Sequence record: NC_061449.1
Length of the DNA: 64,000 nt
Direction: 5' to 3' (one strand)
Shown: in pieces, positions 1,510 through 17,600 of the stretch
Position numbering within the stretch: the first letter of the stretch is position 1
Layout of the letters: each line of letters starts with the position of its first letter
The notes under the pieces: model-generated
The model's database searches: none
The model's input: the letters and a program-made list of their open reading frames with translations, nothing else
What the model was told of the DNA's origin: nothing
Program-made: the position numbers and the translations under genes

Positions 1510-2535
1510 CTATTCCTCCAATACGCCGCTAATCTCCGAAAACATATTCTTGTACACTAAAGAACCATTCAGCTTGTCCAGTCTCTCAGGCAGAACGTAG
1601 AGGTGAGGCGATGTGCGCATGTTAGCCCACGTCTTCTCGTTACGATCCAGACCTCCAAGCATAGGTACGATAACCATACTCAGGTTCTTGTTTGCCTTGA
1701 CGAAACCAATGTCAATATGTTTCCTGTTTATGCTTCTGAACAACTTGTTGATTGCGTCCAAACCAACAGGTCGATTAAATTCCGTATCACTAACAGTATT
1801 GACAAGGCTGATAAGAAAACCTTTATCTTTGCTTTCAATGTCGAATAGGTCAGACTTTAAATCACCAACAGTGGACGCAGCGAAGTACGACACGTCATGC
1901 CCATAGTCTTTGAGACAAGCACCGAGCGCACGAGCTGATTCGATGTGCGCTACGTTGTCATCTCGTAGAATGTAAACAGGAGCATCAGCTTGGTACGTGC
2001 GTTGCGTCATCATATTGATAAGATCGCAAGAGGACTTACCGACAGTTGCTAATCCCTTATTTGCTATTACGAATTTGTCCTTATATTGTTCGTAAACATT
2101 TGGTGGCATGAACTTCATATAGTCATCGTCCAGACTAAGTATCATTCGAGGCTTAGATAGCTGGACGACTAGTTGCATACTGCGAAGCGATGCCTTGTAT
2201 TCTGTATCTGAAAGCACACGGCTTATAGGCAGATACTGCACGACAACGAAACGGTCATCAATTGAATCAACGACCGAACGTATCAACGTGCTACCGAGTG
2301 TCGGACCCGCAGAGAACTGAGTAACGATCATCAGGCTATTCTCAACCAAAGGAGCTGTTGAGGACATTGTGATGCCGTTACCCACTTGCTGCGTAGAGCG
2401 CTCCCACGTTAAGGTTGGCTCGCCTCCGCTATCGGCATATACATTAATTGCGCTACACCAGAGACAGGCTCCAAGAATGTAAGCAGCAATACGTTGTCTG
2501 GATCGGCTTCGGCTGGATTGACAGTTTCCGGCCAT
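1510..2535 (-). CDS. secreted protein, weakly resembling a periplasmic solute-binding fold
   Basis: 341 aa; AGAGGAG RBS 8 nt before ATG; signal-peptide-like N-terminus ending VYA|DS; alternating alpha/beta pattern. Confidence 0.65.
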   Translation of the reverse strand: MAGNCQSSRSRSRQRIAAYILGACLWCSAINVYADSGGEPTLTWERSTQQVGNGITMSSTAPLVENSLMIVTQFSAGPTLGSTLIRSVVDSIDDRFVVVQYLPISRVLSDTEYKASLRSMQLVVQLSKPRMILSLDDDYMKFMPPNVYEQYKDKFVIANKGLATVGKSSCDLINMMTQRTYQADAPVYILRDDNVAHIESARALGACLKDYGHDVSYFAASTVGDLKSDLFDIESKDKGFLISLVNTVSDTEFNRPVGLDAINKLFRSINRKHIDIGFVKANKNLSMVIVPMLGGLDRNEKTWANMRTSPHLYVLPERLDKLNGSLVYKNMFSEISGVLEE

Positions 2536-3233
2536 AGAACTTCTCCTCTATCGTCAGTGACGTAAGGAATGCCTGCGCCCTTGCCCAATCCATGCCGCAA
2601 GGCCCATACGGTGTCGGCATTCTGCTGCACAAACACTAACCCTTTCACCGACGCTTCATCAGTCGCCTGCTCAAGCACCTCGACACGGGCAGAAAGAAGC
2701 TGAGCCTCAGACTGTAGGTTACGAATAGCAGAAAGGTTAGAGTTAACACGCGCGTTCATGTTGTTGAACATGGTGAAGAACGAGTTGTTCATCGCCGTGC
2801 GGACGCCGTCCGTATAGGACTTAGGAATAAGTTCATCGCTGTCAAACGTTGTTACGCCTTTACGAGCCAGAACTTTACCAGTAAGACGTCCACCGCTTGC
2901 GCTGATAATCTGAGGGGCAGGCAGATCAGCTTCATCCCAGATTTGAACAGTGGTCATCACCGTATTGTAGTCAGTTTCCTCTTGCCACGTATTCTTGTAC
3001 GGCGCAGTAGCCGTCTTAGACTTACGCCGCATGACTTTCTTATATCCTGCATTTGCGCCATCTGCAATGATCCAGAGACCGTTAAGCGGGAATACGTGAG
3101 TGACCGGTTCGACGAAGGAGAGAATGATTGTAACATCCGCTCCTACCTTGTACGCAATATCATTCGACGCCGACAGACCTTGCTGTTGTGCAAGACTAAT
3201 CAACGTGTCCACGTAGTTAGTCAACTGGCTCAT
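2409..3233 (-). CDS. tail-fibre-associated protein with coiled coil
   Basis: 274 aa; AGGAG RBS; central coiled coil; C-terminal W-x-L-x-HGLG..P-Y-V-x-D..LTF..P.SG.A motif typical of phage fibre proteins. Confidence 0.7.
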   Translation of the reverse strand: MSQLTNYVDTLISLAQQQGLSASNDIAYKVGADVTIILSFVEPVTHVFPLNGLWIIADGANAGYKKVMRRKSKTATAPYKNTWQEETDYNTVMTTVQIWDEADLPAPQIISASGGRLTGKVLARKGVTTFDSDELIPKSYTDGVRTAMNNSFFTMFNNMNARVNSNLSAIRNLQSEAQLLSARVEVLEQATDEASVKGLVFVQQNADTVWALRHGLGKGAGIPYVTDDRGEVLWPETVNPAEADPDNVLLLTFLEPVSGVAQLMYMPIAEASQP

Positions 3234-7651: not shown

Positions 7652-9673
7652 TTATGCAAAGACTACGTTCGTGATCGCAATGTAATCCAGTTCTACACCG
7701 TCACCTCTATCAGAACTTGAGTAGAGGTATAGCCAAATTTCCTCACCTGCAGGAACATTGACGTTAATCGTGTACGACTGCATGGCTGTAGTGTTCAACG
7801 GATGGAACGCACTTCCGTTAGGGTCAGAACGTTCGTACCAACTAATGCCACTATGCCACGAACCCTGTTTACCAGAGTATCGAATAGCAACAGTGATTTG
7901 CTTGATACGACGGGTGAAGAAGTTATTCCACTTAATCCAACCTCTGGAGCCTCCCCAGAGAACACCATAGTCACCATCAGCAGCGCGTACTTGCGACCAG
8001 AAGTTACCAAAGCCACGACCACCTGTGTGTTCAATCTCGTAGCAGTACCACGGGAACGGGTCTGCTTCTGGAGGCTGCGCATTGCCGCCTTCGATTGTCA
8101 CACAACGATATGGAACAGTGAAGTCACTCACATTGATATGTGGTGGCTGAATCGGACAGTACACGTAGTACGACCAATCACATCCGATAGGCGCTGTCGC
8201 TCGCACTGTGATGTTAGAGCGAAGCACATGCTCAGGGTATTTCCAAAATTCGAGTGTGCCAGTCTTGCCCGCAGCAACGATAGAGGTATCGAGTACGTTC
8301 ATGTTCTGGTCAAACACTTCGAACTTGGTATCAAACGAGTTCGCTACGCAGACAACAAGCCCCGCGCGAATATCTGTCTGAGTTCCTAACGCAAAATTAT
8401 CTTCTGTGGTTGGATGACCGGCAGAGTATACGCTGTAACTCTGACATGGGTGCATGTATTCACGAGCACCACGTTCACCTGGGCAGTAGAGACTGTAGAA
8501 GCAACTCGCAAGCGATGCAGCATTGCCGAAGTCTTTGCTGACCACACGAACCATAATGTCACACGCAACGCCTTTAGGGTCAAAGTAGAAATACAGATAG
8601 CCTTCGCCTGTCTTAGCGTCGAGCGTTGTGGCAATACGTTGACCGCCTTGGTAGACCTCAATGAAGTCGAACGTTTCCCACGACGTGTAATCGAGATACA
8701 TCCAACCTGCAATCCAACCGATAAAGTGATAGTATTCGAAAGCGTTAGCGTTCTGAATACGTTCAGCAATAGGCCAGACTGTTGCGTGACATGGTGCAGG
8801 GAAGATTGGGCTGCCGATATAGTCAGGATGAATGACGTCAGGGAAGTTGATAACGTCATACGATGCCTGACTATCGAGCGCTAACCCACCACGGTCAGAC
8901 GGTGCAGCAAGACGAGGCGGATATACTTCGAGACTCCAGCCGTACCCTTGAGTTGTACGCACACGCACCATGATACGCATATCAGAAGCGTCAGGGTCGA
9001 ACTGGAATTTAATTCGAGAACGCCCTGTCAACTTGCCACACGTTGAAGCAACACGCGCACCCATGTGATATACATCGACGCTCGCACCGCCAGGCGCATA
9101 CGACGCAATCATCAGCTCGACATAACCTTCTATGGCTGGCATTGCATAGTACGTTTCAGTGATCACAGCACCACGTCCGTGAACAGACGCATATGGTACG
9201 TTGGGGTTAGCGTAAGTGCCTAATCCTGCGCGAGAAGCAACCCCAGTAGGGTCGTAGGATTCGATGGCCTTGATGCCGGGTCTGTTGATAGAACGACCAG
9301 TAGGAGGAGCGAAAGAGTTAACAAGACCGAAGCCAGTGCGACCAGCATCAGGCAAGTCAAACCCCGCAGGATAGCCGGTAAGTATGTCATACTTCTCACG
9401 ACCGCCACTCCCTATGCCATTGCCTGAGCCTTTGGTTGTTGACGTAGGACCGCCGCCACACGCGCCCGTTTCGAGATTCGAACACGGGTCATCGTATGTG
9501 GGGTCAAACGAGTCATCAATGAGATGCCAACGCTTGCCCCACTGGTTACGCACACTGAACTTCTCGGGAGTTAAAGGCGTCCAGTCTCCCTGATGTGTGC
9601 GTATGAACATAGGCGTGTCCACACAGTCATGCCAACCGTTATTCGCAGCATTACGAACGCGAAAACGAGACAT
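7652..9673 (-). CDS. Cys-rich virion fibre/adhesin protein with repeated beta-sandwich modules
   Basis: 673 aa; three related modules (V/I-D/E-V-Y..G.R.A.T) and an aromatic-rich C-terminal carbohydrate-binding-like domain. Confidence 0.7.
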   Translation of the reverse strand: MSRFRVRNAANNGWHDCVDTPMFIRTHQGDWTPLTPEKFSVRNQWGKRWHLIDDSFDPTYDDPCSNLETGACGGGPTSTTKGSGNGIGSGGREKYDILTGYPAGFDLPDAGRTGFGLVNSFAPPTGRSINRPGIKAIESYDPTGVASRAGLGTYANPNVPYASVHGRGAVITETYYAMPAIEGYVELMIASYAPGGASVDVYHMGARVASTCGKLTGRSRIKFQFDPDASDMRIMVRVRTTQGYGWSLEVYPPRLAAPSDRGGLALDSQASYDVINFPDVIHPDYIGSPIFPAPCHATVWPIAERIQNANAFEYYHFIGWIAGWMYLDYTSWETFDFIEVYQGGQRIATTLDAKTGEGYLYFYFDPKGVACDIMVRVVSKDFGNAASLASCFYSLYCPGERGAREYMHPCQSYSVYSAGHPTTEDNFALGTQTDIRAGLVVCVANSFDTKFEVFDQNMNVLDTSIVAAGKTGTLEFWKYPEHVLRSNITVRATAPIGCDWSYYVYCPIQPPHINVSDFTVPYRCVTIEGGNAQPPEADPFPWYCYEIEHTGGRGFGNFWSQVRAADGDYGVLWGGSRGWIKWNNFFTRRIKQITVAIRYSGKQGSWHSGISWYERSDPNGSAFHPLNTTAMQSYTINVNVPAGEEIWLYLYSSSDRGDGVELDYIAITNVVFA

Positions 9674-9682
9674 GCTTTCTCC

Positions 9683-10174
9683 TTAAGGACGGACCCAGAT
9701 GGCTCCGGGACTGATCTCTTGATCGATAGCAGGGTCAGTATCTTGCACGAAGACTTGTACTGTGCCTGGGTTACCCGGAGCGCCAGTAGGGCCAGTCGGA
9801 CCTGTAGGGCCAGCAGGACCACGATTGCCTACGTAACCTTGTTTGCCTTGCTGCCCATCAGTACCACGAGGACCCGGACAACCGTCTGTGCCTCGACGAC
9901 CATCATTACCCATCAGGCCGTCGATACCATCACGACCGGCAGGACCAACTCCACCAGCAGGACCGTAGCCAATGCTGTGAATAGTAGGCAGACCCGCGAT
10001 TTGCAGCTTGCCGATATTAGGGATATTGATTGCCAACACACCAGTAAGCGCATCGAACGCTCCGCTTAGAGTGCTATCGTCTTCTGACGTGTCAACAGTA
10101 ATACCACCTTGTGTCGCTACGACAGGACCAGAAGCATTGGCCCCGACGAGCGATATATCAACCTTAGATACCAT
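9683..10174 (-). CDS. collagen-like protein
   Basis: 163 aa; Gly-X-Y run containing GCPG; FDALTGVLAI..GLPT motif. Confidence 0.85.
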   Translation of the reverse strand: MVSKVDISLVGANASGPVVATQGGITVDTSEDDSTLSGAFDALTGVLAINIPNIGKLQIAGLPTIHSIGYGPAGGVGPAGRDGIDGLMGNDGRRGTDGCPGPRGTDGQQGKQGYVGNRGPAGPTGPTGPTGAPGNPGTVQVFVQDTDPAIDQEISPGAIWVRP

Positions 10175-10183
10175 GATTACTCC

Positions 10184-10816
10184 TTACGGCCAGGTTGTGC
10201 CTTGATCTTTTGTAGGGTCTACCCATATCGTCCCGGCTGCAACATTTCCGGGCTGGGTAGCACTCACAATAATAGACAGACGACCCGCAGGGCCCGCTGC
10301 GCCTGTAGGACCTGTAGGGCCTGTAGCGCCAGTTGCACCTGTAGGACCAGTGCCACCACGAGGACCAGTAGGCCCGGTAGGCCCCATAGGACCTGTTCGA
10401 CCGTCTGGTCCAGTAGGACCGACAGGACCGGGTAGACCATCACGTCCATCAGGACCGGGTAGACCCTGCTCACCGTCAGGACCGACGTCACCGTCACAAC
10501 CAGGCTCACCCGGATTACCATCTCGTCCATCGCGACCATCTTTACCATCAGCGCCTGTCTCACCTCTACTGCCCGGACGTCCCTCTGGAATATCAGACGC
10601 TGTAGGGAAACCGCCGACTTTTACTGTCTGTCCGTTAGCGAACTTGAGAGTAAGAATACCCGAAGTCGCATCGAACGATGAATCAGCAGTAAGCTCTGCG
10701 GGCACATCAGAATCAGCAGGGTCTATTGCAAGCACACCAGACTGAGCGCGAATCGCAGTAGCGGTGGTCGTCGAACCAGCCTGAATGAGACCGGTCTTAA
10801 CTTTAATCAGACTCAT
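10184..10816 (-). CDS. collagen-like protein
   Basis: 210 aa; about 33 Gly-X-Y triplets, GPT-rich; [14 protein letters not shown] motif. Confidence 0.85.
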
Positions 10817-12258
10817 TACTTTTTCTCCGCTTTCGCAACGATATCCGTGTTGTGTACGAGTACATCGCCGACGAAGTAACAGTCAAATGGATCGACGTCT
10901 ATATCGACTGTCTTCACATGAGCATCTACTCGGCGGAACTCGTAAATTGACACAGGTCCTTTGCGGCCTAAAACAGTTTGTCCTGCTTGAACATCACGCG
11001 CAGGAACATAGCGCCACACGCTGTCATCGTAAATCAAGACAGGGTGCTCGTGCGTGAACTTCTGACCGTTGATAACGAAGTAATGATCTTCTTCACCATA
11101 TTTAAGAGCAGTCACAGTAGCGTTTACCAGATTGCCTTTCAGACTCTGAGAAGACCACTGACGGAAGTTCTTCGGTTGATTAGAGAAGCCCAGCAGACTA
11201 TCACCGACGAGAACGTCTTCGACAGCTTTAGGTCCTGTAATCGTTTCTACCTCAGAACCAAACACGATACAACCAGAAGTTGCAGTGTTTGTAGGGTTAC
11301 GCGCTACGACTGTCAAAGCAGAACTCACAGTAACAGTTGGACGCGACGTTTGACCAAGGTCAGTTACTACGCAACGAATAGTGCCTTTGATTGTACGGTC
11401 AGCACCGAGTCCAAGACGCAGATAGAAGTTAACGATACACGTTGAGGATGTTGTAGCGTCAAGCGTTACACCCTCAGTAGTTGTGATAGACCACTGATAC
11501 TTATATGGGCCTACACCTCCACGCGCGTTAACAGGCAGATACGCAAGCGAAGTAAACACATCAGAACCCTGTACTGCACGTTGACCAACCATGTACAGAC
11601 TAGAGACTGACGCAGCAAGAGGTGTTATCGTAGGCAGAGGCGGAGCTGGGGTAACGTTGCTCGTAGGATATAACCAAACAAACACTTTACCGTCTGTAGG
11701 CTGTGTACTCGACAGCACGGCAGTGGTGATAGGCGCTGGTCCTGTAGGACCTGTTGCACCTGAGATACAGCTCGGACCATCGTTCCCACGAGGACCTATT
11801 GGACCCGTAGGACCCGTAGGACCATCTGGCCCCGTAGGACCGTCAGGACCCATGCGACCAGTATCGCCTGGAGGTCCGTCTTCACCGTCACGTCCAGGGT
11901 CACCTACAGGACCAGTCTTGCCTCTATTGCCAATCTTACCAGGACAGCCTTGACGACCTGTTTCACCGTCACGACCATCTCGTCCATCACGACCGGGAGA
12001 ACCCGGAGCGCCTCGACGCCCAGGTTTCCCTTCGCCAAACATAGCGATTGTCGGGAGTCCGGGAACGTTTATCACATCCCCGTTCTTCTTGATGAACACT
12101 AACACACCTGTCTTGCTGTTAAATCTTACGCTTGCGAGTTGTGTAAGAGCAGCAGTATCAGAGGATTCGAACTGAGCGCTACCACCAACACCAACCAGCG
12201 ACTTACCTTCATCGTTGGCGGTTGTTTCGATTTGCGAAAGTTTTAACTGTGTTGTCAT
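10816..12258 (-). CDS. collagen-like fibre protein with Ig-like domain and C-terminal Hint domain
   Basis: 480 aa; Gly-X-Y region, Ig-like segment, then CIVFGSEV...FTHEHPV...[10 protein letters not shown]|T. Confidence 0.85.
10849..11271 (-). other. Hint (intein-like) autoprocessing domain, 141 aa, no endonuclease
   Basis: Cys1 (res 330), block-B T-x-x-H (THEH), block-F D (VDIDV), terminal His-Asn followed by Thr+1. Confidence 0.85.
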
Positions 12259-14591
12259 TTCGGTTCAACCTTAATGCACAAGTTACCAGACAGCTTCGAA
12301 CCGTAGCTTGTGATCTGCGAATCAGTGATACGCACCTTAGCCACAATGTCGATGAAGCCTTGAGGCTGGTTCTCAATGAGCACGGTATACATCTGCGTCA
12401 GGCTAACGTTTGAATAGGCAATCACTTCTGTCAGACTCGCATCAGACGTGACGACGTTGAACCCTGCACTACCTGTACCCTTGAGGCCACGGCCATATTC
12501 AGCTTCGGCTGTTCCCGGAACTTTAAACGACAGGACGTACTCGATATGCTCTTTACCGCTGGTGGCTGCGAAGCCAGGACCCAGTTGACACTGGAAGTCA
12601 GCGGTACACGTAAGCATAACACCCTTGGTGAAGTCGATACGTTGAACGATGGTAAGTTCTTCAGAGTCTTCTACTACCTGCTGGATGTTGTACATGTTCT
12701 TTGGATCAGCTTCTTCGGCGAGAGCCTGAGTGTTGCTGATCGTAATCTCAGGCCACGTACCTTTAATCTGAATACCTTCACCCTGAATGATCTCAGGTGC
12801 AGCGATAGGCACGTCGATAGGAGGCAGACCCTGACGTTTGAACATGTAGCCGGTCGGTGTAGGGATAGCGTCAATGATGACACCATCAACTGAACTGTCT
12901 TTCGAACCCACCGCCATAACGTTCTCGAAGATTGTGATCTCAACGAGTGTATCAGCAGGGATAGGCGAAAGCGTTTTCAGTGTGTTGCCCGCGACCGTAA
13001 ACTCTTGCGTGTGAACTGTCAGACCACTCATTGCTACAATACAGTGCGACTTGTTCAGTGGTGTAGTCGGCAGAGTAAATGTATCAGCATCATAAGGCAG
13101 GCGATACTGAGCAACACGAATACGAGTAGACCAGTTGGCGCGTTCTTCATAGCGAGCTACATAGAATGTGTACTTCTGACCAGAAGGAATTGCTTCGGTC
13201 AGTGTGACGCTGTTACCGTTCGTGAGTTTATACACGGTGGTAGGCTGCCACGTAGAGCCGACAACACAGAACACCATGTCAACGCTATCAATCGGCTTAT
13301 TACCGAGTTTGAACAGCGCAGTCTGACCGTCACCAACACCTTCGTATGTTTCAAACAGGACAACGTGACCTTGCGACGGTTCGATGCGGAACTGACGCAT
13401 ATCAAGCTGCATACGCTGTTCAGGATAAGACGAAAGCAAAAGCTGATCGTCCACAACGCTATACGCAGTGCGAGGTTGAAGCACACCAGAAGTACCGAGC
13501 AGCAAGTCAGTCGAGCTATCGAGAATCTCGGACAGCGTGTAACGTAACTTGTCAGGAGTTGCTGTAGTCACAACAGAACTAAACAGCATCTTGCCCGGTG
13601 GAACGAATAGCGTACCTTGTGTCTGACGTGTGCTGCCAGCGACAGGACCCCAGTACGGCTGCAAGTCTTTGCCTCTGTACAATGCCCATGCTTCCGGTAC
13701 ATCGTTATTCAGCGGCCACGGAATGCCAGCAGACGGAGTTGTCGGGTTAGTGATGCGTCGCCACACAGCAATCGAAGTCTGAGCACTAACGAAAGGAATC
13801 GCGCTGTCCATATTGACAAGCTGACCGTTCGTGTACTTGAAGTGGCGACAAGCACCTGCACCTGTACCTGAGATTGTTTGAACAAGCACAATCTCGTTCG
13901 CTTTAAGACTAGTAATTGACGCAATCTTAAAGGTGTTCGCATTAATGAATCCAGCAGCAGTAATCTGTCCGCTGAAAATACGGTCGTGCTCACTGAAAGC
14001 CCAGTAATACGAGCCTTGACCGTAGCGATACGCAGTACCTGGAGAGCGTGTGCCGTCAGAGTTAACGTGCAGGTCAAGAACAGACACGGCGTTGAACACG
14101 TTGTCGTTCAAGCTCGGAAGATTTTGCAGCGTTGCTACACTCGGTATTGAAGTGTAGTCCGCCAGCTTAACAGCAAGAATCTTTTGAATGTCCTGCTGGA
14201 TATGTACGAGAAGACTAACACGGCTGATAGAGTTCGGCACAGCAATGATAGGCTCTTCCAAGACAACGTGACCGAAAGGTCTGTTATCTGAGAGCATGAT
14301 CAACAGCTCACCTACTCGTTTAAGCGTTTCACCTTCAACGTATTTGACTTTAATATCAAAGACGAAGCGAGCGCTGTTCTCGGTAAGAACCTGAACATAT
14401 GACAATGCGCCCGACGCAAGCTCGTTGCCAAGTAACTGCTCTGGAACCACTGATGGGTTTGAGCCTACAAAGTCACCTGCTTTGAATGCCACGGGTTGAA
14501 CTGCAAGTCCACTAGCATTCGCGTTCGCAACGGCCTGTTCTCCCTGAGGCGTTAGACGCAGAGCGTTAACGTAGATAGATTCAGTGGCCAT
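12255..14591 (-). CDS. baseplate/tail-fibre attachment protein with N-terminal tail-collar-fibre-like domain
   Basis: Start ATG 14591 with AGGAG RBS; N-terminus LTPQGEQAVA..AFKAGD..VGELLI..FGH resembles the DUF3751 tail-collar domain; internal repeated beta modules. Confidence 0.7.
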   Translation of the reverse strand: MATESIYVNALRLTPQGEQAVANANASGLAVQPVAFKAGDFVGSNPSVVPEQLLGNELASGALSYVQVLTENSARFVFDIKVKYVEGETLKRVGELLIMLSDNRPFGHVVLEEPIIAVPNSISRVSLLVHIQQDIQKILAVKLADYTSIPSVATLQNLPSLNDNVFNAVSVLDLHVNSDGTRSPGTAYRYGQGSYYWAFSEHDRIFSGQITAAGFINANTFKIASITSLKANEIVLVQTISGTGAGACRHFKYTNGQLVNMDSAIPFVSAQTSIAVWRRITNPTTPSAGIPWPLNNDVPEAWALYRGKDLQPYWGPVAGSTRQTQGTLFVPPGKMLFSSVVTTATPDKLRYTLSEILDSSTDLLLGTSGVLQPRTAYSVVDDQLLLSSYPEQRMQLDMRQFRIEPSQGHVVLFETYEGVGDGQTALFKLGNKPIDSVDMVFCVVGSTWQPTTVYKLTNGNSVTLTEAIPSGQKYTFYVARYEERANWSTRIRVAQYRLPYDADTFTLPTTPLNKSHCIVAMSGLTVHTQEFTVAGNTLKTLSPIPADTLVEITIFENVMAVGSKDSSVDGVIIDAIPTPTGYMFKRQGLPPIDVPIAAPEIIQGEGIQIKGTWPEITISNTQALAEEADPKNMYNIQQVVEDSEELTIVQRIDFTKGVMLTCTADFQCQLGPGFAATSGKEHIEYVLSFKVPGTAEAEYGRGLKGTGSAGFNVVTSDASLTEVIAYSNVSLTQMYTVLIENQPQGFIDIVAKVRITDSQITSYGSKLSGNLCIKVEPK

Positions 14592-14620
14592 CAAAGAACT
14601 CCTTGGGTTTTAACTGTCAT

Positions 14621-14628
14621 AAATTAGC
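14621..14628 (-). promoter_or_regulatory. GCTAATTT motif, putative late promoter
   Basis: Lies between a terminator and the RBS; the same 8-mer occurs in five other intergenic gaps. Confidence 0.6.
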
Positions 14629-14631
14629 AAG

Positions 14632-14674
14632 AAACAAAAAGGGAGCCAGGAACATGTCGCTCCGGACTCCCTTT
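14632..14674 (-). terminator. intrinsic terminator
   Basis: GGGAG...CTCCC stem followed by TTTTTGTTT, just after the stop at 14678. Confidence 0.7.
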
Positions 14675-14677
14675 ATT

Positions 14678-17600
14678 TTACTGGTAACGCACAGTGATAA
14701 CAGAGGAACCGAACGCTCGCGCATTGGTACGATAGATCAAGACGTTCTCTGTCAGGTTATCATACACAATTTTGCCAACGATAGGACCTTTCTTACCGTT
14801 ATCTCCAGTGACAGGCCACTGAGCACCATCAAACCCAAGCCACCCTTTGTTCACTGTTCCAGAACTGTCCGCGGCTGCTGCAAACACAGCTTGTCCGTAT
14901 GACTGTCTGACAACGAAGTAACCGTACTCGTCTTGTTTTGTGGACAACACGAACTGGCCACCTGTCTTAGAACGTAAACGTGTCGGCAACTGAGCAAGTG
15001 CGATACTCACACCAGTAATACCGAAAGGTGCAACACCGAATCGAGGATAGGACGACATGGCTTTCATGAAGTGCGTCTGCGTAAGCGTCTGCTGTCCTTC
15101 AATGTAGATAGCCTTAACACCAAAGTCCGTGTCGTTAAGCAACAGGCCGATAGTCAGGCGACCAGTCTGAGCATTGATAGAGATGCCCTGCACGTCTACC
15201 ACGTCACCCTTACTGTTCGTAATCTGCCACAGGCACTTAGCGCTCACATCATCTTTCACGAACGTACCAGTGCGACCAAGCAATGCGTTCATCTGCATTG
15301 AACTATCGTCACGCACATTCGTGTAGCCACCTACTGTCAGGTCTTGTGGGAAACCAATGCCTGGGCATGTGATCTCTTGCACGAGACTAATAGTGGTGCG
15401 CTGCTCGGTGATGATACATTCAACCTTAACCTTCTGCGGGTCTTTCGATGCAGGGAAACGGAACGTACCGTCTTGCGCAAGCGTAAACCCACTGACAGAT
15501 TCAATCACGTTCCACTGGAACTTCACACTATTCGCATCAGGCAAGCGGCTTGAACCAGTTGCACCAGAGCGTCGTGTGTAGAATGCAGTGAAGCGGTAAT
15601 CAGTGTTAGGGCTGATATTGCCGGGAGGGTTTTCGATATACCCGTTAAGAATCGTGTTCTGCGTTTGAAGCTGAATCGTGCGCGTACCGATAATTGTTTC
15701 ATCAGCAAGCGACTGCGGGTTCTGCTTGGTGAACACAGCATGAAGGTTAATAACACCGTCAGACAATTGGGTCTGTCCAATAAACAAATGACCGTTCAGA
15801 GGATTGACAGACACACCATCAACGTTAGTCTCGTCACCGATAGACCAGATAGCGTCAGTCGTCGTGAGTTCTGCATCGGGATCGATGATGACACGCAGAC
15901 CGTAAGGCACGTACCAGCGTCCGTTCTCGTAACCGATAGTAGGGTTACGATCAGATACATCCCACACAACGTCAGGACCAGTGATGCCAATCTGACGGAG
16001 ATACGTGTTCGCCTGAACAAGATAGACAAGCAACGTCTTCTCAATCTGATACTGGTCGCACGTATAGCGAGCGCGAATCAGCACAGCACCATTAACGTTC
16101 TTGCTAGGTGTGAGTGAACCTTCTGCATCAATCTCGGCCACTATGTCGGTAGTAGGCACAAGCATCTGCGTATTGTTCGGACCTGGCTGCACGTAATAGT
16201 TCTGCACCACCAGCCACTCTGAATCGACTTCGAGATCAAACGTCTTCGGCGTTTCCTCCGCATACGAACCGTCGAGTGTACGCATCACGCCACCAGTCTT
16301 ATACGTGTTGACCAGAGTGTATGACTCGGACAGCACGTCAGCACTGATTTGCGTTGCACCCTCAATACGGCTGTTAATGATGTTGTTGATACTCTGCTTA
16401 GGCTGAGGAGCCACCGTCACGTCAATCTTATTGCTCACTCGGAAGAATGAAGCAATAACCTGCGTAGCGGTGCTGTAGTCGTACTTGCTCTTGCCTGTTT
16501 GCAGAATAGCACCGTCAAAGTATGCTTTGTTCAGGTCAGCGATACTGCCGATAGCATTGAACATAGGCAGCTTACTGACACCCATCGAACGGAAGTCTTT
16601 GTAGTCAGTAGGTGTGCGACCCTCAACGATTTCAACAACCGCCATCCCACTGTATCGACCAGGCGAGAACTGGAGGAACTTGTAATCGTCTTCGTCTTTC
16701 TCAGGCCAGTTACCAACCCACTCAGCAGCGGTCACATACTCCTGACTACCATCAACATAGGTCGCAAGCAGACGAACGAACGTGCGTGACTTCTCGTACA
16801 ACAAGTCAGGACATTCGATAGTAATACTGTCCACCAGCGAGCGCGTAGGTATCAATTGCAAATCACGGTAGTTAGTGAGATGCGTACCTTCGAACTCATA
16901 CTCCATGCTGATACGCGCAGAACCATGCAGGTCACCCTGATAGTAAAGCACATACTCTTTCACACTGCGTCCCATGATTGGGTCATACACAGTGTTATTG
17001 CTTTGGCTAACAGTCAGCGTTACCCAGCGAGCATAATCAGGATGGTCAGGGTCGAACTGACTCGGGTCCTGCCCTTGTTCAACTGCTTGTTGTTGCAATC
17101 GGATTGTACGCTGTCTCGCTTCCTCAATAGCAGACGCAGACGGAACGTACTCAACCGTAACAGCAGCCGCAGCAGCATAAGACAAGCCGTTGTTCCATAG
17201 ACAGACCACAGGCATCATAAGTGTGGAGCCGCTACTGATAGTAGGAGAGGATCGCAGGTCAACTGACTTAGGAATCATAATCGTGTCGTTAACGAGAATG
17301 ATTCGGTTGAACGTTACGGTAGAGCTACCGTCAATGAAGGTGAAGTTCAGCGCATACTTCAACGCATCACCGCTAACCAGAGGGGCTTCGAACTCACCTG
17401 TCTGCGTATCGACACGAGGGATAGCATTGACCGCTGTTGCTTTGTCTTCACTACTGAACCAGATGCCAAACACTTCGATGTAAGCAACCACGATCGAAGG
17501 GTCACGCGCATTAATCTGGGCCTGAGTAGCAGACGCTAGTACATACAGTGCCATTGCTTTCGGGCGAACAATGTCGCGCTCAACCACAGTCTCAGGTACA

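Follow-up and report, generated by a model that had tools for sequence, protein, structure and literature searches.

Erwinia phage pEa_SNUABM_17, a jumbo myovirus of the genus Alexandravirus with a genome of 263.9 kb (NC_061449.1), encodes a 480 amino acid protein, gp106, that is best read as a collagen-like tail fibre (or tail 'hair') protein and that ends in a domain related to inteins. The gene lies within the 64,000-nucleotide stretch of DNA analysed here (the window), to which all positions refer unless stated otherwise; record coordinates are obtained by adding 62,000. By its motifs and its modelled fold, the C-terminal domain is a member of the Hint superfamily that stands nearest to the type-A bacterial intein-like (BIL) domains, reportedly dealt with by Amitai in 2003 and Dassa in 2004. 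We propose, giving the idea about an even chance, that this domain forms part of a domesticated, vertically inherited, self-excising BIL-like cassette, made up of a linker ending at Gly329, the Hint domain itself and a lysine-containing tail, and that excision would transfer the tail to Gly329. What appears to be new is the pairing of a Hint domain with a short lysine tail at the end of a phage fibre; the Hint fold and the type-A BIL kind are already known.

Domain layout of gp106 and its Hint domain

The gp106 open reading frame (ORF) occupies positions 10816-12258 on the minus strand, exactly where the original prediction had placed it, and begins with an ATG codon. Its product is 100% identical to MPK72_gp106, annotated as 'virion structural protein' (NC_061449.1, 72816-74258), and matches PHROG 38766 over its full length (E 2.6e-256). 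The N-terminal domain (residues 1-75; 12034-12258, minus strand, as are all the parts that follow) is modelled as beta strands at a predicted local distance difference test (pLDDT) score of 51-72 and aligns with the corresponding part of two shorter collagen-like paralogues. A Gly-X-Y region follows (residues 77-175; 11734-12030), recognised by Pfam Collagen (E 8.9e-15), by a regular-expression count and by invariant glycine columns: 29 unbroken triplets (residues 77-163) are interrupted at Cys164 and followed by three more (residues 167-175), giving 32 in total. A second cysteine, Cys105, lies inside the repeat and is conserved. Next comes an Ig-like beta-sandwich (residues 213-322 approximately; 11293-11622) that AlphaFold2 models as all-beta, with block-mean pLDDT mostly between 85 and 94, and that Foldseek matches to Ig and PapD-type sandwiches; a weak match to SprB repeats is also seen. 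A conserved Ala-Arg-Asn-Pro sequence closes this domain. The Gly-X-Y repeat, the matches to PHROG tail-fibre families and the location of the gene in a tail and baseplate module are together characteristic of collagen-like fibres.

The proposed cassette occupies the remainder of the protein. It comprises a variable linker (residues 323-329; 11272-11292) whose last residue is the invariant Gly329, at position -1, the type-A BIL-like Hint domain (residues 330-470; 10849-11271) and a ten-residue tail (residues 471-480; 10819-10848) with threonine at +1 and invariant Asp+2, Glu+8 and Lys+9. At 141 residues the Hint domain is the size of a mini-intein. A phmmer search of the PDB with gp106 returns 2LWY, a bacterial intein-like domain, across the whole of the Hint domain (E 1.4e-6) and Foldseek ranks the same entry first (E 7.9e-9, template modelling (TM) score 0.81), followed by Tetrahymena BUBL BIL2 (TM 0.72-0.75) and then by mini-inteins. 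AlphaFold2 likewise produces a Hint fold, with block-mean pLDDT of 83-91 over residues 330-470. PT-HINT (PF07591) is the best-scoring Pfam Hint family but at 23.6 bits falls under its 27.7-bit cut-off, with Hint_2 at 16.4; several gp106 orthologues carry a precomputed PF07591 match. Pfam yields no endonuclease family match in gp106 at E<=0.1, in keeping, as is the size of the domain, with the earlier claim that there is no homing endonuclease.

The original prediction, made from the sequence alone, described a Gly-X-Y region, an Ig-like domain and a C-terminal Hint domain, and all three are recovered by the Pfam, AlphaFold2, Foldseek and phmmer results above. Its motifs also hold: SG|C at residues 328-330, THEH at 402-405 and VHN at 468-470, followed by the ten-residue tail, so that gp106 does possess the full set of splicing residues (Cys1, which is Cys330; the block-B histidine of Thr402-x-x-His405; His469-Asn470; and threonine at +1). 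The gp106 orthologues form 22 clusters (46-98% identity, 476-490 amino acids), or 23 sequences with gp106 itself, and every cluster carries the Hint domain. Gly329, Cys330, Thr402, Glu404, His405, His469, Asn470, Asp472, Glu478 and Lys479 are invariant in all 23 sequences and Thr471 is found in 22. Invariance across orthologues reaching down to 46% identity means that the presence of these residues is not due to chance, and the gp106 Hint fold is very probably catalytically competent. Conservation is uneven along the protein: mean pairwise identity is 0.58 in the N-terminal domain, 0.67 in the Ig-like domain and 0.66 in the Hint domain, but falls to 0.43 in the linker ahead of Gly329, against 0.66-0.83 in the segments that flank it, and peaks at 0.83 in the tail, the best conserved segment of all.

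Inheritance of the cassette and its wider family

The Hint domain evolves much like the remainder of gp106. Across seven phage genomes its ratio of nonsynonymous to synonymous substitution rates (dN/dS) is 0.10, compared with 0.09-0.12 for the other gp106 domains, and its pairwise identity tracks that of the Ig-like and N-terminal domains (r 0.90, a value reached in 0 of 2000 Mantel permutations). The GC content of the Hint segment (0.46-0.49) is that of the neighbouring non-collagen genes, on which ground recent acquisition of the domain was rejected. Two distant homologues, Phage NCTB BN7874_136 and its counterpart in Alcaligenes phage Afa-NA1 (27-39% identity), have the Hint domain at the same site with gene order kept, and no second Hint copy was found in the window or in the pEa_SNUABM_17 genome. 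Purifying dN/dS, co-divergence and the presence of the domain in distant homologues indicate that it has long been an ordinary, selected and vertically inherited part of gp106. Taken with the unremarkable GC content, the variable N-terminal flank and the strongly conserved tail, these results favour the earlier reading of a domesticated module, and we have considerable confidence that the gp106 Hint domain belongs to a cassette and is not a selfish intein.

A single related clade is without the domain. In the Dickeya phages JA11, JA13, JA29 and JA33 (Salmondvirus), found through a structural match in BFVD, the syntenic gp106 orthologue is only 324 amino acids long. It is 48% identical to gp106 through the N-terminal domain, collagen region and Ig-like domain and ends a single residue (lysine) past the conserved Ala-Arg-Asn-Pro, with the next gene starting 10 nt downstream. 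Seven metagenomic Hint-less clusters (61-99% identity to JA13_097) are all 322-324 amino acids long and all end in Asn-Pro-Lys. The linker, the Hint domain and the tail are thus missing jointly; since they come and go as one, the apparent C-extein is part of the module and not of the host protein. In a neighbour-joining tree built from the non-repeat, non-Hint parts of gp106, the Hint-less clade is nested among Hint-bearers as sister to the Alexandravirus-like group, with four further Hint-bearing lineages outside the two (a bootstrap distance check gave 200/200). Given this nesting, a single loss of the whole cassette is far more parsimonious than repeated gains at one spot, and loss rather than intein homing is the likeliest history that the sequences suggest.

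Sporadic presence of the Hint domain among homologues had been named beforehand as the sign of a mobile mini-intein. That sign is there in a narrow sense only, in that one syntenic clade is without the domain; the linker and tail have gone with it, the clade is nested and no empty homing site is left behind. With neither contiguous exteins nor sporadic presence nor phylogenetic conflict, the absence lacks the signature of a mobile intein.

The gp106 module has many relatives. A HMMER search with the Hint domain and tail returned 392 proteins at E<=0.001; the counts given here are for the 146 non-orthologous matches in which a terminal His-Asn could be located, each of them representing a separate 50%-identity cluster. 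In 105 of the 146 the Hint domain lies at the extreme C-terminus, no more than 15 residues following the His-Asn as a tail. Lysine occurs in 101 of these 105 short tails, although its position varies (+1, or +4 to +9; it is at +9 in P0024, P0025 and Afa-NA1), and the chain ends within 0-1 residue of the last lysine in 59 of the 101. The tails of certain relatives consist of a single lysine residue. For 86 of the short-tail proteins Cys1 could be located and an N-extein is present; 55 of these have glycine at -1, usually within a glycine run. The +1 threonine singled out in the original prediction is present in gp106 but proves not to be a conserved feature of the module, with alanine, serine or methionine in its place in the next relatives and serine or threonine in only 14 of the 105 short tails.

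PT-HINT matches 41 of 71 relatives. The upstream parts of these proteins contain collagen repeats, fn3, Ig, PKD, Calx-beta, PASTA or tail-collar fibre domains and match PHROG tail-fibre families, and wherever the genomic context can be read it is a phage tail module; the loci of P0040, P0041 and P0062 were uninformative in this respect. On a 311-kb contig the fibre genes show the same synteny as the gp106 locus and are accompanied by a second Hint-ended protein, whilst in a 56-kb myophage the Hint-ended gene lies downstream of baseplate and fibre genes and is preceded by a fibre gene with a weak Peptidase_S74 match. In a third context the Hint-ended gene comes after those of a very large protein and of an NlpC/P60 protein, which recalls where siphophage tip proteins are encoded. 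In Phage NCTB one module holds three Hint proteins, annotated by the depositors as 'contains intein domain', and ten further relatives are all on contigs of 2.4-329 kb. We found no description of fibre-terminal Hint domains in the open-access literature; only GenBank product names record them. A contrast set comes from a scan of IMG/VR with a back-translated block-G DNA motif: nearly all of its 120 Hint-positive loci (L018-L137) are canonical inteins, with cysteine, serine or threonine at +1 in 96 of 103 (cysteine in 92 of 103) and C-exteins of the terminase type, flanks quite unlike those of the fibre cassette.

Several side observations concern the same family. On the 311-kb metagenomic phage contig, the two Hint-ended proteins P0026 (723 amino acids) and P0073 (1208 amino acids) belong to one fibre module (L002:8001-10172 and 12606-16232). 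Stand-alone Hint ORFs of about 145-160 amino acids, without Cys1 or an N-extein, also occur (P0038, P0041, P0085, P0108, P0114 and others), several of them beginning Met-Ala-Asp-Gly. One such ORF with a degenerate block B, NCTB BN7874_135 (L017:5298-5759), directly follows a Hint-ended fibre gene. Remnants, members of split pairs and errors of gene calling are all conceivable origins for them. No gene is called in the 1.3 kb preceding the stand-alone gene P0041 (L013:1-1300), where the genetic code may be an alternative one or an upstream ORF may be disrupted. Many of the canonical IMG/VR inteins (+1 cysteine) interrupt terminase-like proteins at a point only 20-25 residues short of the C-terminus, just ahead of an Asp-Ala-x-Arg-Tyr type motif.

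Possible fates of the fibre C-terminus

The original prediction had listed splicing onto the tail, cross-linking to other virion proteins, attachment of a small molecule and release of a chaperone as candidate outcomes. In the scheme we propose, Cys330 would attack the Gly329 carbonyl after translation (an N-S acyl shift) to produce a thioester, cyclisation of Asn470 would sever the Hint domain from the tail, and the 15.8-kDa Hint domain would depart as the ten-residue tail moved onto Gly329. Thr471 would permit the canonical class-1 (branched-ester) route in pEa_SNUABM_17. In relatives with alanine or methionine at +1 an amine would have to attack in place of a hydroxyl, and there it would be the free amine of the tail that effects the transfer. 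This would leave a mature fibre with a lysine-terminated peptide at its end, a few residues past the Ig-like domain, an arrangement with which the Asn-Pro-Lys end of the Hint-less clade is weakly consistent. Before its removal, the Hint domain would probably cap the C-terminus for a time or assist assembly, and the cassette might alternatively supply a capping chemistry. Type-A BIL domains are reported to follow such a course, with an N-terminal thioester, cleavage by Asn cyclisation and ligation via the freed amine (PMC4031507). Conservation of the tail as well as of the two active sites, and the single-lysine tails of certain relatives, suggest that the tail is meant to stay on the fibre and not to be discarded. 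We think it likely that gp106 processes itself in vivo, and rate as slightly better than even the prospect that the mature product carries the tail, through whichever type of bond.

Several points weigh against this scheme. The Hint-less clade shows that the cassette is dispensable, and splicing alone does not account for its retention, since the spliced product could be encoded directly. AlphaFold2 does not place the tail with confidence (pLDDT <50 for residues 473-480). The +1 residue is alanine in P0020, P0024 and NCTB and methionine in Afa-NA1 and P0025, all near relatives. Lysine is among the last three residues in 65 of the 105 short tails, while for long ORFs taken from phage contigs the figure is 15 of 61 (Fisher p 5e-6; a further 23 short-tail relatives have lysine at +1), a comparison drawn from a single HMMER representative set whose members are related, so that their independence is overstated; a C-terminal lysine is in any case fairly common in phage proteins (25% of the controls). 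In vitro, type-A BILs give mostly cleavage products (PMC4031507, PMC7664689), and a search of the open-access literature found neither virion mass spectrometry for Alexandravirus nor biochemistry of any family member.

Amongst the systems to which gp106 can be compared, the type-A BIL domains come closest. The Clostridium thermocellum BIL (PDB 2LWY) is its best match in both sequence and structure, and the two share Cys1, a block-B T-x-x-H, the His-Asn pair and the lack of an endonuclease, these being the motifs that are invariant in the 23 orthologues. In both cases, too, the host is a variable surface protein and not a conserved enzyme, gp106 being a fibre protein with a variable linker flank, and most gp106 relatives share with type-A BILs a non-nucleophilic +1 residue. 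In this last respect, however, gp106 and its orthologues differ, with threonine at +1 in 22 of the 23 sequences. The phage Hint domains also differ in lying at the extreme C-terminus, with 1-15 residues after them and a near-universal tail lysine, and in sitting on tail fibre and tip proteins. BIL2 of the BUBL polyubiquitin-like locus of Tetrahymena thermophila (PDB 6Y75, 6TMM) resembles gp106 in structure, but is eukaryotic, has ubiquitin-like flanks where gp106 has collagen and Ig-like regions upstream and ten residues downstream, and is only 17-18% identical to gp106. The lysine epsilon-amine chemistry reported for BIL2 (PMC8616854) would fit the conserved tail lysine of gp106.

Canonical class-1 mini-inteins such as gp41-1 and the phage terminase inteins share the fold and the four catalytic positions with gp106, including the +1 hydroxyl. 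They interrupt conserved motifs of essential enzymes, however, nearly always have cysteine, serine or threonine at +1, and have intein-free alleles in which the exteins are contiguous, whereas the gp106 Hint domain is flanked by a variable linker and a tail owned by the module, both missing from Hint-less orthologues, and is neither sporadic nor mobile, judging from its co-divergence, the single nested Hint-less clade and the lack of an endonuclease match. The Hint (Hog) domain of Hedgehog proteins is likewise C-terminal to its cargo, to which it is joined at Gly|Cys and whose C-terminus it activates as a thioester. Hedgehog-type Hint domains carry out the N-terminal reaction only and lack the C-terminal Asn. 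They thus differ from gp106, in which the His-Asn is invariant, and where gp106 has only ten residues beyond the Hint domain, Hedgehog has a region for sterol recognition. The Peptidase S74 intramolecular chaperone domain of phage tailspikes and trimeric fibres is analogous in role, as a self-releasing C-terminal module that occurs in similar gene clusters, but is a Ser-Lys dyad protease of unrelated fold and chemistry; a Pfam scan of gp106 gave no match to S74 (PF13884). PT-HINT domains, finally, which are the pretoxin Hint domains of polymorphic toxins, precede and release a C-terminal toxin domain, unlike the gp106 Hint domain with its short tail.

The strongest rival to tail transfer is simple cleavage, in which the Hint domain would be a self-removing cap or assembly aid, the Gly329 thioester would be hydrolysed, Hint domain and tail would be discarded and the fibre would end at Gly329. 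We regard this as the less likely outcome but a serious one, for BILs mostly cleave in vitro. The Hint-less orthologues are viable fibres that end right past the Ig-like domain, the +1 nucleophile varies in relatives and in one relative a Hint-ended protein sits next to the weakly S74-like fibre gene, with both kinds of end-module found in the same kind of cluster. What cleavage alone leaves unexplained is the invariance of His-Asn in 23/23 orthologues and 146/146 relatives (the latter by construction of the step that located it), when Hint domains limited to the N-terminal reaction, as in Hedgehog, dispense with the Asn, and also the exceptional conservation of the tail, with its invariant Asp+2, Glu+8 and Lys+9. 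Were the N-terminal cut the only functional one, there would be little reason to keep both a His-Asn pair and a conserved tail, and tail transfer is favoured on that ground. Resolution of the thioester by a lysine side chain, either that of Lys479, which would leave a branched isopeptide end, or that of a lysine in another virion protein, which would link fibre and virion, seems doubtful to us. It would explain why lysine is kept better than the +1 nucleophile (Lys479 in 23/23 orthologues; 101/105 in the wider set), and the glycine-rich stretch ahead of Cys1 and the single-lysine tails, for which attack by the side chain, ahead of Asn cyclisation, seems the one workable route, would suit it, as would the rank of BIL2 as second-best structural match, an isopeptide between a lysine epsilon-amine and a C-terminus being reported for BIL2 (PMC8616854). 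On the other side, the BIL2 match reflects merely a shared Hint fold at low identity, the shifting position of the tail lysine speaks against any fixed geometry, a bias towards C-terminal lysine is general in bacterial and phage proteins, and no candidate acceptor protein was found that differs between Hint-bearing and Hint-less gene clusters.

The two remaining alternatives fare worse. Gp106 might contain a degenerate selfish mini-intein that lost its endonuclease, became stranded near the 3' end of a fibre gene and is kept since failed splicing harms the fibre. All of the class-1 residues are indeed present, one related clade is without the element, and canonical phage inteins with cysteine at +1 do sit near the C-termini of terminase-like proteins. 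We nevertheless consider this very improbable: the Hint-less orthologues are also without the C-extein and linker and so present no contiguous empty site, the N-terminal flank is a variable linker instead of a conserved host motif, relatives do not keep the +1 nucleophile, the Hint-plus-lysine-tail unit caps non-homologous proteins, and the domain co-diverges with its host gene, has been lost once in a nested clade and is single copy in the genome. Hardest of all to credit is that the Hint domain undergoes no processing and is retained on the mature fibre tip as a structural or binding domain; nothing specific favours this beyond a well-folded AlphaFold2 model, the catalytic residues that are invariant throughout the family would not be needed for a purely structural role and Hint-less orthologues exist.

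Gene neighbourhood and implications

The gene for gp106 lies in a tail and baseplate module that encodes a PAAR protein, a 1511 amino acid tail protein, a weak tail-collar fibre match and fibre proteins. Overlapping stop and start codons chain it to its neighbours on the same strand: ATGA joins it to the stop of gp107 (12255-14594; 779 amino acids), the upstream neighbour, in which the N-terminal tail-collar fibre family PF12571 gives a weak, below cut-off match (E 0.0023), and TAATG joins it to the start of gp105 (10184-10816; 210 amino acids), a collagen-like paralogue without Ig-like or Hint parts. A second collagen-like paralogue, gp104 (9683-10174, minus strand; 163 amino acids), has a shorter Gly-X-Y run. 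The possibility of a -1 frameshift from gp106 into the gp105 frame at its A-rich end (10816-10830, ...GAG AAA AAG TAA TG) was dropped, as the last codon varies among orthologues.

Together, gp105 and gp104 (9683-10816) share with gp106 the N-terminal domain, an equivalent of Cys105 and a post-collagen Thr-Gln/Asp-Pro ... Trp ... Pro motif, after which they stop. The three proteins could form three homotrimers or one mixed trimer. The same collagen-like trio is found in Salmondvirus, NCTB and Afa-NA1. In Erwinia phage vB_EamM_Y3 (KY984068.1) the Hint domain of the orthologue is 72.5% identical to that of gp106, and Y3 is cited as a 'hairy' myovirus in the reference list of PMC11512310; the trio may correspond to the Y3 'hairs'.

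Further along the window, gp103 (7652-9673, minus strand; 673 amino acids) has no Hint domain, but around 460 of its residues are homologous to the N-terminal part of a 1304 amino acid NCTB protein annotated as 'large intein domain protein' (L017:20-3934), which ends in a glycine run|Cys-Hint-His-Asn and a seven-residue lysine tail. The C-terminal halves of the two are unrelated, suggesting that Hint cassettes are gained or lost with whole distal modules. An HNH endonuclease gene, gp098 (2409-3233; 64409-65233 in the record), is located between tail-fibre genes, with a 17-nt overlap with the end of gp099. It is about 7.6 kb from the Hint domain and no link between the two was seen.

Self-cleaving C-terminal modules control the folding and maturation of phage fibres, and those known are S74 proteases. 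A Hint-based equivalent would, if real, be a second and chemically different solution, yielding an activated thioester instead of a plain cut. A C-terminal Hint module is seen on hundreds of phage tail proteins, including those of jumbo phages of plant-associated bacteria, and the proposed cassette would extend BIL-domain biology to a setting in which substrate, product and phenotype can be read from virions, with the Hint-bearing (Alexandravirus) and Hint-less (Salmondvirus) orthologues providing a natural comparison pair. For protein chemists, short and efficient Hint modules of this C-terminal kind, with their minimal tails, may have a further appeal as natural generators of thioesters. It is an unlikely possibility that the cassette is a widespread phage device by which the fibre C-terminus becomes a thioester that a lysine side chain then resolves. 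Were that so, phages would have a means of making an isopeptide-capped or cross-linked fibre end without ATP or a partner enzyme, a viral counterpart of the 'ubiquitination by protein splicing' of BUBL. Such post-translational chemistry would be of a class new to virion assembly.

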